Part shown: positions 105,601 to 114,600 of the stretch, in pieces | Position numbering within the stretch: the first letter of the stretch is position 1 | Layout of the letters: every line of letters begins with the position of its first letter | Assembly (NCBI GenBank): GCA_951406725.2 | Contig: OX597824.1 | Span: 32,260,001-32,508,000, forward strand | Direction of reading: 5' to 3' | Length of the DNA: 248,000 nucleotides | DNA from: Octopus vulgaris | Taxonomy: Eukaryota | Translations under genes and position numbers: made by a program | Notes under the pieces: generated by a model | The model's input: the letters and a program-made list of their open reading frames with translations, nothing else | Databases searched by the model: none | What the model was told of the DNA's origin: nothing

Positions 105601-108600
105601 GGTGCCAATGCATAGTGTCAAAAATCCCAATATTGCCACCAAGACACAGATTCTGCAACAGCTTGGATTTCAAGGGCTCACAGCTCTTCAATATTCACCC
105701 CCAAAATCCTGAGAGTACCTGCATGCTGTGGATACAGGTGTCATCAAAACAGAACTGGATTTCCTCCTGTCAAGAGTTCTGGATGAGCTTACTTCACAGC
105801 AGGAAATACAGATGAGGACTGCAGCATCAAACTCACTTCATTCTCATTCATCAAATTTCATATCAAATTCCACATGTCAGAAGTGGTTTCAAATAGTGAA
105901 GGTGTAGCAATGCTAACAGTGGTGGCCTAACAGGGCTGTAGCTCTTGAGCTGGAACTAGTTAAATTTATTCCAGTACTAAAGACACAGTCATGCTTTTGA
106001 TAAAGTGAAAGTATTCTCTGAGGACTCTATATTCATCATCATCATCATCATCGTTAAATGTCCGCTTTCCATGCTAGCATGGGTTGGACGATTCAACTGG
106101 GGTCTGGGAAGCTAGAAGGCTGCACCAGGCCCAGTCTGATCTGGCAGTGTTTCTACGGCTGGATGCCCTTCCTAACGCCAACCACTCCGTGAGTGTAGTA
106201 GGTTCTTTTTACGTGCCACCAGCACAGGTGCCATACGAGGCTGGCAAACGGCCAAGATCGGATGGTGCTTTTTACGTGCCACCGGCACAGAGACCAGACG
106301 AAGCTGGCAACAGCCACGATCGGATGGTGCTTTTTACGTGCCACCAGCACAGAGGCCAGTCAGGGCAGCTCTGGCTACAGCCATGTTCGGACGGTTTTCT
106401 TACGTGCCACAGCTACAAATTCCATTGATGTTGATTGATTAAGATTTTGATTTGTCCCTGTTTATACACTGACTATTTTAACTGGGTGTACTGGATACAT
106501 TTTAACATGGCATCACTGCTAGAGAGGCTACTTTTTACCTTACAAGATTAAAGAGTTCTCTTGATTTTACATTCTCTCCTTTCATTCAACTCAAATAAGA
106601 TTGAGTGGGTGAATTGAAGAGTGGGTGATGGTAGAGCGATAGCTATCATGGGAGGGAGAAGGAAGAGTGAGAGAATGAGTAGGGGGGAGAGACTGACAGG
106701 AGCAGAAAATGAGACAGTGATGAGCAGCAATACACGTTGGCTGTTAATGATTAATATTTGAAACCCTAGAATAACAAGTTAAATTAATTAGGTATTAATT
106801 ATGATCATTGATTCACCAGATTAATTTCAAAGCACCCAACACAAAATTCAGCAAATCTAAATACTATAATTAAATAACAACTTTAATAAAACAATTAATT
106901 AATAAAACCACTCAATAAACTTCAAAAATATTTAAAACATTTTTTTCTCAAAAATCTATTTTATTTTGTTTGAAAAGCAAAGAAAATTTTTGGAAAAAAT
107001 CACATTTTTTAAATTTCAACTTTCTTCTTGTTTTGTCATGCAAACTAATAGAGCAAGCACTGAATTCCATTCTACATTGTCTTGTTTTTTTTTTGTTTTT
107101 TTGATACGGCAATAGAAGTAACTGTAGCAGGAACTACACTCTAAAAACAAATATGAGAGCAGATAGCAACAATTGTAAAAAAAAAAATCAACAAAAGTTT
107201 GTAGTAGTAGTAGTAGTTGTAGTAGTAATAGTAGTAGTAGTGGTGCTAGTAGTCATGGAAACAGCAACAGAAGAATTTTTTTTAACTTTATTTTTTTTCT
107301 TATTTCTTACATGCTTTTTGACTTACTTAGAATACACTTTTTGCTGTTCCATTGCATTACGGAATTCTTTGAGGGATACGGTGCCATCTTGATTAGCATC
107401 AAATTCCTGATAGGGCAGAGGCAAATGAAAGGTAATAATTGATAACTAAGCAGGACAGCTAAAATTGATGAAGACATTTCCAGCAAAATAGAGCAATAAT
107501 AATAATGATAATAATGATAATAATAATAATAATAATAATAATAATAATAATAATAATAATAATAATAATAATAATAATGATAATAATAATAAAAGGAATA
107601 ATAATGATAAAAAAAGAAATTATAAAACTTGTGGAATAAAAACAGAACAAGAAATTAAAAAAACAAACAAAATCTCAAATGAATACTGAGAAAATGGTGA
107701 TGTATACAAATTGTATTGTACAGATGAAAACTTGAGAAATTCTAACCATAACCTGCTAAAAACAGAAGTGAACCTTCCCTCAAATCACACCCTACTATCT
107801 TTAAAAAAATGATATTTTAATAAACATTTCAGTGAAAGTACTAATGTGGCAGTAATGTAACAAAAGTTGCGAATCATAAGTAGACATCGTATACAGGAGA
107901 TAGTACTACATGTATTATAAATGGAAAATGCTGAGTGAAAATGGTGTGAGAAGAAAAACTAGTTCTAACAATGATGGGATATGATAAAGGAGGAGAAAAC
108001 AAGAGGTATGGCATAAGACTATTGTACATCTGTCTGAACCATACTAACCATACTATTAAAATGAGGATAAGGATGATAACTTATAAAAATTAATATAATT
108101 CTAAAACTGCATTTACTAAGAGACTCTCAGTTAAAACCCAAGATATTTAGGCTATACCATAAAACTTCTAAAAGCTAATCAAGTTAGAGACTAAAATGTT
108201 GATTAAAATGTTGATTGAGTAAGAAAATATTCAAGCTTTTCTGATGTAGATTTTCCCTTCTCTACAAAACTTAAACCAAATGAGTCAAGAAATTTACTAT
108301 TTCATTGAAGCTAAATATATTTGTGACCATTTGTTCGTGTTTCCTATGTCAATAGAAAAGAAAAACATCTTCCTAAGAAGAAAAACAATGGAAGATACAG
108401 TTAATCAATCTAAAAATATTGCGATCACATGACCGGCCAGGCAATCAGATGTTTCATATTGCAGGTTACAATGTGTTTTGCATCGTTTTAGCCATCAAAT
108501 GATTCCACCCCATTGGCTAGGTGAACAGGCCAACTTTCCCCTCCGGTTGAAAGGGACACTGGAGCAACAAGAAATGAAGTGTTTTGCTCAAGAACACAAA

Positions 108601-111600: not shown

Positions 111601-114600
111601 AAAGAAATATATAAAAAATAAAATAAAAACAAACTATCAAATTGTATAGCACCAATGACAATAAACTATTTCAAAGCGACAGAATATTTCAAATGGTACA
111701 AAAACATTCAACATAAGGGTATAGGTTTGAGAGTTTGAAAATAAGAGATAAATCTATAAAATAAATAAATAAATATATAACGACTCAAAATAAAGCAGAA
111801 TATAGAATAGAAAAGGACATAAGTAAGCAGGAACAGATATCTGTTAATGAACAAATTAATTAATGAATAGTAAAAGGATATGCATTCGTTAAATAATAAA
111901 GAAAAGTACATTCAAGAATGAAATTATGTGGTGACTAGAATTCAAACCAAATGAAGAAGATGAAGACACAGAAAATTGACTGTTTGCTGGCACCAACTCA
112001 GGCAAAGAATATTAAAAAAGAATAATGTATATTTGAAGATATAGAAGATTGTACTGAAATCATGCACACCTCTATGCACATGTGTGTGTATGTGTGTTTG
112101 TGTATATATACATACATGTATATATATATATATATACATATGTATATATATGTATGTGTGTATATATATATATATATATATACATATATACATAAATATA
112201 TTTGCATAAATATATATTCATACATATATATATGTATATAACATTTATATGTATAATATATATATTGTATATAAATATATTTATAATTATGTGTAAGTAT
112301 ATATATATATATATATATATATATATATATATATATATATATATATATATGATGTTTTTTGTTGTATGTTGTTAGTGTCTCCAATCAGTATTTGAAATTA
112401 AATTATAACAATATTTCTTAGGAAATATAAATCTAGTTTTTAAAAGTATTGGTTTAATCTGATTGCAAAATATTAATTTGTTAATTGTTAATCTTTCATT
112501 TATAGAAGAAATAAAAAACATTTCTCTTGAGTTAAATGTTGTTGAATAAATGAGTTGAAGTATTGAAAATATTCAATAATTCTGCCTTAATATAAATGGA
112601 GATACAACAACAAGAACTACAAAAAACAAAGACAACACAAGTTATTTTCCTCACCGTTACCAACAACACCATCATGTAATAATATAGCACTTTAGGGAAG
112701 GCATAGTGACCACGACTGGACAGTTATGTGTTAAAGCAATCATACACACCGGCAGTACATTTTCTGTGATTCCATTAGTTGCCTGAATTCTTTCACTGAT
112801 ATGTAGCCATCCCGATTAGTATCATAGTCCTATAGTTTGGTAAGAAAGAATTCTATATTTTGGTAAGAAAAATTACATGCACAAATTCGAAGAGGCAAGT
112901 TTCTTTAGCCATGAAAAGATTTTGTACGTCTTTTCTGAGGGACAAGTTTAATGTCAAAACTTGTACAATTTTACAGAAAGAATTTATGAAAAGCCTCAAA
113001 GCCTCATGGTTTCTGGAACTTAAGGAATATATTTTTGAACTTAAAAACTAATTAAGAAATTATGTAAATATCCTCAGTTTAGATAAGAAAATATAGGAAA
113101 ACCAGAAATCTTTCCACTTTTAATATATTGTAACCTCATTATATGCATGTGTATATGTGTGTGTGTGTGTATGTGTGTGTGTGCGTGTGTGTGTGTTGTA
113201 TGATGATATGTGATGGCAAATAAAAATTTGATAAAAAATAGCTTTTTGAAGTGACATTTTGCTAGGTACTGCGTTAAAATAAAACAAAACTGTCAAATAT
113301 TGCAGTGCTGTAAAATACCATTTTTGCATGTTGTATAAAAATCCAAAATGGTTTTATACAAATAGGAATGGTGATATTAATAGAAACAGAATATAAAAAA
113401 ATCAACAACAAATAAACAAATATTTTAAGTAAAAAATGGTGTCAGCTTATAATTATTAAGATTTATGTTAGATTGGCACACTCTCTTACTTTTGTAGAAT
113501 TAAATAATTTTATGGATTCCGTGTTCAACAGAATATAATTATTTTCTAACATTCCTGACGATATTGTTTTTGTTTTCTTTGGTTAGAAAGCTTACTGATT
113601 GGGTATGACAGAGAGAGACACACATAAATCTCTCTACCTCACATACACACCAAGTGCGTGTGTGTGTATATATATATACATATACACACACACACACTTG
113701 GTGTGTATGTGAGGTATATATATATATATAAATTAGAAAAAATATATGTAATTTTTTCTAAATGGTATAATATAATTTTTCCTTATTGAATTGATAAAAG
113801 GTGGTTTTATTTCTAATTTATATATATGTATTATATTTTGTGAAATTTGATTTAGTATTTCTAAATTGAATTTTTCCCTGTAAGTTTGGAATAATATTCC
113901 CTCATATTATTATTATTATCATATATATATATATATATATATATATATATATATATATATATACACAGTAATCCCTTGACTATTGTGGGTGTTACATTCC
114001 AAAACTCCCTGTGATAGATGAAAATCTGTGAAGTAGAAACAGTACTGTACTGTACATTTTAAAAATTATTTTTATAATTTGTATATATTTATTTTATTAT
114101 AAATGCAAAACAACACCATGGAGGAATCGATGTTAGCTTAAATAATAAACCGTGATAGGTGAACAGGATTACCGTGTATAGATATTCTTTTATTCTTTTA
114201 CTTGTTTCAGTCATTTGACTGCAGCCATGCTAGAACACCACCTTAAAGGATTTTAGTTATAGAAGTCGACCCCAGGATTTATTCTTTGTAAGCCTAGTAC
114301 TTATTCTATTGGCATCTTTTGTTGAGCCACTAAGTTACAGGGTCATAAACACACCAGCATTGGTTGTCAAGTGATGGTGGAGGGGGGCACACAAACACAG
114401 ACCCACACACATAAGCACACACATCCACACACACACACATATATATATGATGGGCTTCTTTCAGTTTCTGTCTACCAAGCCTTTGTTCAGCCCAAGGCTA
114501 TATATATATATATACATATATATATATATGTATTTATATATATGTATATATATATGTATATATATTATATATATATATATATATATATATATATATATAT

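Follow-up and report, generated by a model that had tools for sequence, protein, structure and literature searches.

A probable mutually exclusive exon pair that exchanges EF-hand 1 of the octopus ryanodine receptor

INTRODUCTION

Cassette splicing tunes vertebrate ryanodine receptors (RyRs), as in the case of the ASI and ASII cassettes of RyR1 (reviewed in PMC8301844). Insect RyR genes carry a pair of alternative exons, a and b (IASI/ASI), which encode part of the SPRY2 domain at about residues 1135 to 1168, are mutually exclusive, and are regulated both developmentally and anatomically (PMC3342285, PMC3989282). Alternative exons 10, 11, 22, and 23 have been mentioned for the Drosophila RyR (PMC13171102). 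Beyond this family, tandem-duplicated exons of the alpha-actinin genes ACTN1 and ACTN4 swap an EF-hand motif, and a survey of tandem duplicated exon substitution lists RYR3, fly RyR, and worm unc-68 (PMC9741552). Here, we describe two homologous exons, A and B, that encode EF-hand 1 (EF1) in the RyR gene of Octopus vulgaris. They lie in a 248,000-nucleotide (nt) stretch of assembly GCA_951406725.2 (contig OX597824.1, positions 32,260,001 to 32,508,000), which we refer to as the window and within which all octopus coordinates below are given. We consider it probable that the single octopus RyR gene has in A and B a tandem-duplicated exon pair used in a mutually exclusive manner, that each mRNA therefore contains one of two EF1 versions, and that the exchange acts by tuning an interface of the channel.

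RESULTS

Two homologous 80-nt exons encode EF-hand 1 of a single RyR gene

A tblastn search of RyR proteins against the window yielded more than 55 colinear exon matches, which define a single RyR gene spanning 67266..247715 on the minus strand. The matches cover the protein from about residue 1720 to the C terminus, roughly its last two thirds; the gene runs past the end of the window, and its 5' portion lies outside. Homology extends along the channel, including the EF-hand pair and the pore region, and the nearest database relatives are named ryanodine receptor and carry the RyR sets of Pfam domains. When compared with RyR structures, the S2-S3/pore region gave E values of 1e-76 to 1e-82. 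A 103-residue EF stretch aligned without gaps and over its full length to RyR1 4057-4159 and RyR2 4013-4115, with E values of 1e-31 to 1e-34 against the RyR1, RyR2, and RyR3 structures. At sites where the O. vulgaris protein CAI9729939.1 differs from that of Octopus bimaculoides, the window encodes the O. vulgaris residue in 24 of 24 testable cases and the O. bimaculoides residue in 0 of 24, which assigns it to the O. vulgaris/sinensis lineage.

A first-pass annotation made from the sequence alone had placed in this gene two homologous 80-nt exons, 5.3 kb apart, both running from phase 0 to phase 2 with GT-AG ends, and had proposed that they swap EF1. The exons were confirmed to the base, and the assignment to EF1 was borne out by RyR homology and by alignment of the exchanged segment to RyR1 4079-4104, which comprises the EF1 loop (RyR1 4081-4092) and the exiting helix. 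A and B (Table 1) are identical at 53 of 80 nucleotides and 14 of 26 amino acids. Exon A is preceded by ctatag and followed by gtgtgt, and its final CG combines with the first base of the downstream exon to encode Arg. Exon B is preceded by ctatcag and followed by gtaagt, and its final AA is completed in the same way to encode Asn. The two are thus homologous neighbors of equal length and phase that carry separate splice sites, as is expected of tandem-duplicated exons. When the whole 248-kb window was searched in six frames under permissive settings, the A and B peptides matched only themselves and each other (E = 2.5e-7); no third EF1 copy was found, and the next matches had E values above 1. 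There are therefore exactly two copies, and their likeness is far beyond chance.

Cephalopod transcripts and gene models contain exactly one of the two exons

To follow the exons in other species, full-length RyRs were retrieved across animals using a length-padded query that was scored on the EF region only, and the EF1 segment was extracted from the cluster members. Among 12 RefSeq isoforms of O. bimaculoides that were examined, A is present in X2 (XP_014787737.1) and X16 (XP_014787754.1), and B is present in X3, X4, X5, X7, X8, X10, X11, X13, X14, and X15. All of these EF1 segments are 100% identical to the window peptides, and no isoform contains both or neither. The segment of the O. vulgaris model CAI9729939.1 is likewise identical to B, and a B-like exon is found in Argonauta hians.

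A second cephalopod, known from assembled transcripts of 16 to 17 kb, has an RyR that is 89% identical to that of Octopus overall. Each of its nine full-length assemblies contains one exon only, A-like in two (P0288 and P0294) and B-like in seven (P0152 and six others). The A-like and B-like assemblies are identical outside the alternatively spliced blocks and thus represent isoforms of one gene. The claim that exactly one exon is used per transcript accordingly holds for 12/12 O. bimaculoides isoforms and 9/9 assemblies of the second cephalopod. At the level of contigs, B-like sequences of the second cephalopod outnumber A-like sequences by 73 to 2, a ratio that comes from unannotated assemblies of this one species and can serve only as a rough guide. 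B is apparently the major variant and A the minor one.

We also observed that the A-form assemblies of the second cephalopod (2/2) have a 36-residue insert (DTLKRIAGG...SDVG, at about residue 1390 and hence outside the window) that its B-form assemblies lack (0/7). This distribution hints that the choice at EF1 is coupled to other splice choices, in a sample that is small and composed of assemblies that may not be independent.

The reading frame separates productive from unproductive splicing

Splicing in silico showed that the upstream exon, A, and the downstream exon form one open frame, as do the upstream exon, B, and the downstream exon. In the downstream exon, a TGA arises at bases 21-23 (101597-101595) when both exons are included and at bases 10-12 (101608-101606) when both are omitted. 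These results uphold the first-pass proposal that either exon alone preserves the frame, that both or neither shift it, and that joint use brings an early stop. The frame shifts in the latter cases because 80 nt is 2 mod 3, and more than 20 exon junctions remain well downstream of the resulting stop. We propose that exclusivity at the protein level would be enforced by the reading frame, with double-inclusion and skipped products presumably being removed by nonsense-mediated decay.

The same early stops could point to a duplicate whose role is mainly regulatory, in which double inclusion or skipping feeds nonsense-mediated decay and so sets RyR dosage, without two proteins being made. The splice sites of the cluster would allow for this, since all four of its exons score below the median on a splice-site position weight matrix (PWM), permitting errors or regulated failure. 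However, a poison exon has no need of the strong protein conservation seen in both exons, Ca2+ ligands included, and productive transcripts exist with each of them. Transcripts with both or neither exon are also missing from the 12 O. bimaculoides isoforms and the nine full-length assemblies, although decay would hide such products. We regard a dosage role as very improbable.

On the same PWM, A scores below B at both of its sites, with 5.7 against 6.5 bits for the acceptor and 6.7 against 8.8 bits for the donor. The matrix was built from 33 other exactly fixed junctions of this RyR gene, so that it rests on few sites, its percentiles are biased by inclusion of the training sites, and its scores are indicative only. 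With that qualification, they are consistent with B as the default exon and A as a regulated minor exon. In the mechanism that we propose, B would be used by default, and A, with its slightly weaker splice sites, would be the less used exon under regulation.

Two mechanisms by which a splice site pair can exclude joint use were ruled out. Steric hindrance entails a distance from donor to branch point of less than ~60 nt, and the octopus A-B intron measures 5,343 nt and its Biomphalaria counterpart 1,073 nt. Incompatibility of the U2 and U12 spliceosomes entails one flanking intron with a /[AG]TATCCTT donor; the donors here (GTAAAA, GTGTGT, and GTAAGT) are all of the U2 type, with AG acceptors. 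When the octopus cluster and the compact cluster of Biomphalaria were scanned for inverted repeats that could provide docking/selector complementarity, the scans were swamped by pairings of AT-rich, microsatellite, or short interspersed nuclear element (SINE) sequence and returned no others.

Two repeat features of the cluster introns were recorded along the way. TA/CA-rich, microsatellite-like arrays (translated as 'YIYIYI') occur in all three introns, at 102345-102936, 112073-112254, and 118496-118685, and are mutually complementary over 160 to 190 nt at 70 to 79%. They are probably ordinary octopus repeat sequence, and long-range pairing between them is conceivable in principle. The intron upstream of exon A also contains a 187-nt inverted repeat pair (114252-114438 and 117457-117643) that is 79% complementary and likely consists of an interspersed element present twice, once in each orientation.

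Table 1. The EF1 exon cluster of the octopus RyR gene (positions in the window)
Feature	Position	Strand	Description
Upstream exon (constitutive)	119067-119002	-	66 nt, phase 0-0; 22 residues, EF1 entering helix; aligns with RyR1 4057-4078, including the E4075 equivalent
Intron, upstream exon to A	112830..119001	-	6,172 nt; TA/CA microsatellite-like arrays and SINE-like inverted pair
Alternative exon A ('R-type')	112829-112750	-	80 nt, phase 0-2; 26 residues, EF1 loop and exiting helix
Intron, A to B	107407..112749	-	5,343 nt
Alternative exon B	107406-107327	-	80 nt, phase 0-2; 26 residues, EF1 loop and exiting helix
Intron, B to downstream exon	101618..107326	-	5,709 nt; large TA/CA microsatellite block at ~102.3-102.9 kb
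Downstream exon (constitutive)	101617-101456	-	162 nt, entered in phase 2; encodes EF-hand 2 (EF2); aligns with RyR1 4105-4159

The two versions retain every Ca2+ ligand and differ at other positions

Both versions match the Pfam EF-hand model PF00036, at 54.9 and 52.5 bits against a cutoff of 25.4, and the best stretch, residues 19-43, corresponds to EF1. By sequence, both loops are canonical Ca2+-binding EF-hands, defined as a 12-residue loop with D1, D/N3, D/N5, G6, a hydrophobic residue at 8, S/T/D at 9, and E12, with a helix on either side. As the first-pass annotation stated, A and B have D1, N3, D5, G6, S9, and E12 in common and differ at loop positions 2, 4, 7, 8, and 10. We then compared 30 molluscan exons, 12 of A-type and 18 of B-type. 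In every one, loop positions 1, 3, 5, 6, 9, and 12 are D, N, D, G, S, and E. The Lys/Glu/Phe residues that follow the loop are likewise invariant in both types, as is the Lys that corresponds to RyR1 K4101. Class-specific differences within the loop are found at position 7 (Tyr/Val in A versus Trp/Cys/Thr in B) and position 10 (Ala/Val versus His/Leu/Pro). A single residue separates the two types strictly: position 27, which lies after the exiting helix and is Arg in 12/12 A-type exons and 0/18 B-type exons, the latter having Glu, Asp, Asn, or Thr.

With no ligand position lost, Ca2+ binding is to be expected of both versions. The first-pass annotation had offered two functional options, a change in Ca2+ binding or a change in contacts between the EF-hand and the S2-S3 loop; because every ligand position is invariant, altered Ca2+ coordination looks the less likely of the two. 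We infer from these residues that tuning occurs at the EF-hand/S2-S3 interface rather than through Ca2+ coordination. In RyR1, D4079 and K4101 bond with the S2-S3 loop of the neighboring subunit, and the K4101E/M substitutions weaken inhibition by Ca2+ and Mg2+ (PMC10832476; for the EF-hand/S2-S3 inactivation mechanism, see also PMC8947763). Both of these positions fall inside the swapped segment. In octopus, the S2-S3 loop is acidic overall (AEQYDYES), with Glu in the place of D4730. The switch would thus alter surface residues, namely, loop positions 7 and 10 and, above all, the Arg (A) or Asn/Glu/Asp (B) located four residues after the K4101-equivalent Lys. The altered charge and shape would change how the EF-hand docks on the S2-S3 loop of the neighboring subunit, and the changed docking would in turn shift Ca2+/Mg2+-dependent inactivation. 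An animal with one RyR gene would in this way gain by splicing some of the diversity that vertebrates obtain from the RyR1, RyR2, and RyR3 paralogues.

The main rival on function accepts the exon pair as real and locates the difference in the EF1 loop, through its affinity for Ca2+ (or Mg2+) or its kinetics, not at the interface. Non-ligand loop residues can generally modulate EF-hand affinity; five of the 12 loop positions differ between the octopus exons (2, 4, 7, 8, and 10), and positions 7 and 10 differ by class. However, the six canonical positions (1, 3, 5, 6, 9, and 12) do not vary in either class across the 30 molluscan exons, the sole strictly class-defining residue, Arg versus non-Arg, is outside the loop, and A and B score alike on EF-hand models. 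A switch in loop affinity is therefore unlikely in our estimation.

The exon cluster is found in molluscs, a brachiopod, and a nemertean

A/B-type EF1 pairs are present in RefSeq/GenBank isoforms of the bivalves Mercenaria, Ruditapes (three variants), Ostrea, Magallana, and Mytilus, in isoforms of the gastropods Haliotis, Gigantopelta, Biomphalaria, Bradybaena, and Pomacea, and in those of the nemertean Lineus longissimus. In the Biomphalaria pfeifferi genome, the upstream exon is followed by an 80-nt exon that ends in CG before gt (Arg), an 80-nt exon that ends in GA before gtaagt (Glu), and the EF2 exon. This pair has AG/GT ends and matches that of octopus in order, length, and phase. The brachiopod Lingula anatina has three 80-nt EF1 copies, each bounded by AG...GT, after the upstream exon (L002 44039-44118, 44758-44837, and 45621-45700); the first ends in CG before gtgtgt, as octopus A does, and the RefSeq model uses the second. 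Single EF1 exon copies were found at the RyR loci of the flatworm Macrostomum, the rotifer Rotaria, and the ostracod Darwinula. No within-species variation at EF1 was seen in the isoform sets of Schistocerca, damselflies, Folsomia, spiders, and termites, nor in those of sea urchins, a crinoid, Schistosoma, Haemonchus, Ptychodera, and Macrobrachium. Among the taxa tested, the cluster thus seems confined to molluscs, brachiopods, and nemerteans.

Some details of gene layout emerged from the same survey. The three-exon arrangement of upstream exon, 80-nt EF1 exon, and EF2 exon is common to octopus, snail, brachiopod, flatworm, and ostracod (Darwinula L006 46516-46995), and in Rotaria sordida (L004 34419-34562), the upstream exon is fused with EF1. 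The Lingula contig lacks an EF2 exon and continues into an OATP-like gene of opposite orientation, a layout suggestive of a break in the assembly. Isoforms of Ruditapes philippinarum carry three EF1 segments (P0300, P0302, and P0299/P0305/P0308), one of which is one residue longer (QKNVFTQ); an exon of 83 nt would keep the same phase.

These counterparts bear on whether one of the octopus exons, most likely A, is a decaying duplicate that is no longer used. In keeping with decay, A has the weaker acceptor and donor on the crude PWM, A-type contigs are rare in the second cephalopod (2 versus 73), and no short octopus transcript fragment containing A was found. However, the A peptide is 100% identical between the window and O. 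bimaculoides. The A-like exon of the second cephalopod matches octopus A at 25/27 residues (the B-like exon matches octopus B at 21/27), and because 25/27 exceeds the 89% average of the protein, A is not behaving as a decaying pseudo-exon. A-like sequence is also present in two full-length assemblies, and A itself is present in RefSeq isoforms X2 and X16; R-type counterparts with an intact open reading frame, a length of 80 nt, and splice sites exist in gastropods, bivalves, and Lingula; and all EF-loop ligand residues are retained in A. The first-pass annotation had named an exon that is unused and lost or disrupted in relatives as the outcome that would undo its claim. This outcome is ruled out by conservation of the pair in other molluscs and the presence of A-like sequence in transcripts, and decay of either exon is barely credible.

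Characters of the R-type exon favor a shared origin

We asked whether the pairs of different animals descend from one duplication. In a maximum-likelihood analysis of the 27-residue EF1 segments, a constraint that united all 12 A-type exons in one clade gave a likelihood marginally above that of the free search (approximately unbiased test, p-AU 0.56), and a constraint that placed cephalopod A and B together was also unrejected (p-AU 0.46). Outside the tree, the Arg-ending exon is the upstream one in Octopus, Biomphalaria, and Lingula, with the same split CG codon in all three, and Tyr at loop position 7 is common to octopus, bivalve, and vetigastropod A-types. These characters favor a shared origin, at least within molluscs, and we think a single origin before the molluscan radiation likely.

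Alternatively, the octopus pair could be a cephalopod-specific duplication, with the gastropod, bivalve, Lingula, and Lineus pairs arising independently and converging. The unrejected clade of cephalopod A and B in an unresolved exon tree would be compatible with this, as would the divergence of octopus A and B, each of which is quite distant from the other molluscan types, and the variable copy number, which reaches three in Lingula and Ruditapes. RyR genes are, moreover, listed with independent duplicated-exon substitutions in vertebrates, flies, and nematodes (PMC9741552). Convergence would nevertheless have to account for the slightly better likelihood of A-type monophyly, the upstream place and terminal CG of the split Arg codon in Octopus, Biomphalaria, and Lingula, the Arg at position 27 in 12/12 A-type exons, and the loop-7 Tyr that octopus, bivalve, and vetigastropod A-types share. 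We consider independent origins doubtful.

Other small exons of the octopus RyR gene

Three further exons of the gene were noted, all on the minus strand. A 27-residue exon at 127467-127547 is present in octopus proteins (O. bimaculoides residues 4052-4078) and has no counterpart in distant references; it was consequently absent from the first homology-guided gene model. A 21-nt micro-exon at 143722-143742, ATAAAGCTGGATCGACTAAAG, lies between AG and GT and encodes IKLDRLK; O. bimaculoides isoform X16 skips it. Optional 7-residue blocks occupy the equivalent place in Lineus (LKLDKMK) and in Schistocerca isoforms (RTMDKLM), and from these sequences, it looks like a very old alternative micro-exon of RyR. 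Finally, RETISVELA is encoded by a 27-nt micro-exon at ~183348-183374, which isoform X8 of O. bimaculoides lacks, as does one A-form transcript of the second cephalopod; an RDAIYGELT block is optional in Lineus at the corresponding position.

DISCUSSION

Our data support an EF1 exon switch in the single octopus RyR gene, and several points weigh against this reading or against the interface mechanism attached to it. The transcript evidence comes from species other than O. vulgaris, namely, from O. bimaculoides models and second-cephalopod assemblies, and RefSeq XP isoforms are computational predictions. Searches for short transcript fragments spanning the junctions, with queries of 178 and 62 residues, found no cephalopod fragment; their sole cephalopod match was a genomic open reading frame of the downstream exon from another octopod. 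The A:B ratio of contigs in the second cephalopod is, as noted, only approximate. With regard to mechanism, Ser replaces the R4736 equivalent in the octopus S2-S3 loop, so that the vertebrate contact map transfers only partly, and the K4101 equivalent is kept in both exons and is therefore not itself switched. A single-sequence AlphaFold model of the A-form EF pair had a mean predicted local distance difference test (pLDDT) score of 57.6, too poor to judge residue 27 or the interface geometry. Lastly, the maximum-likelihood tree leaves the relationships of A and B unresolved, as 27 columns cannot separate one ancient duplication from repeated ones.

Taking distribution and residue pattern together, we tentatively entertain a broader scenario, which is possible rather than probable. 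The EF1 cluster may have arisen once before the molluscan classes split, possibly in the ancestor of molluscs, brachiopods, and nemerteans, and may have persisted for over half a billion years, serving as a charge switch at the EF-hand/S2-S3 interface, with Arg or an acidic/polar residue next to the K4101-equivalent Lys. Animals with a single RyR would thereby have two channels that differ in Ca2+/Mg2+ inactivation, a splicing counterpart of the division of labor between RyR1 and RyR2. The charge switch may also be coordinated with other splice choices in a tissue program.

The role of the RyR EF-hands in Ca2+/Mg2+-dependent inactivation is still debated, and most work on it has relied on artificial mutants and on chimeras of RyR1 and RyR2. 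The exon pair offers a natural experiment: two versions of a channel from one gene that several phyla have retained and that differ at only 12 to 13 residues, all within EF1 and the beginning of the linker. Comparison of A and B channels would directly test whether the EF1 surface sets inactivation. The switch also predicts that molluscan cell types, such as muscle versus neurons or fast versus slow muscle, have differently tuned Ca2+ release.

The first-pass annotation had suggested that the switch might be new and had left this unverified. We found no paper describing an exon swap at EF1 of an RyR, which agrees with that suggestion; however, both isoform classes are already in RefSeq (e.g., XP_014787737.1), and mutually exclusive exons are known elsewhere in RyR. 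The kind of event is thus known, and as far as we searched, its EF1 site in the clade of molluscs, brachiopods, and nemerteans appears to be new to the literature.

How the octopus pair compares with described systems can now be stated. The ASI and ASII regions of RyR1 are include/skip cassettes outside the EF-hand, whereas the octopus event substitutes one homologous exon for another. Vertebrate RyR1 differs from RyR2 and RyR3 in the same structural element that the octopus swaps, but vertebrates vary it between paralogous genes and not by splicing, and as octopus has Ser in place of an R4736 equivalent, the contacts are not identical. In alpha-actinin, as in the octopus RyR, mutually exclusive tandem-duplicated exons replace part of an EF-hand, and the actinin isoforms differ in their Ca2+ behavior; the families are unrelated, and only one actinin version keeps Ca2+ binding, whereas both octopus versions keep every ligand residue.

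The insect a/b exons resemble the octopus pair in that homologous, mutually exclusive exons are used by a single invertebrate RyR gene. They differ in position, being ~3,200 residues more N-terminal and in SPRY2, a protein-interaction domain, rather than in an EF-hand. Schistocerca isoforms show this SPRY2 block at residues 1138-1168, and those of Schistocerca gregaria contain a second homologous-segment substitution at residues 3741-3777, RSVVSTQ…VIACFRQTSLHSLP versus KRVLSAA…AIACLHSEPLHKLR. Its ACFR motif presumably resembles the calmodulin-binding region of RyR1, and our guess is that the block corresponds to Drosophila exons 22/23. Like the octopus exchange, it swaps homologous segments in a regulatory region of RyR, but it lies upstream of the EF-hands. 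EF1 would thus be a third site of substitution splicing in RyR genes, beside SPRY2 and the more C-terminal insect block.

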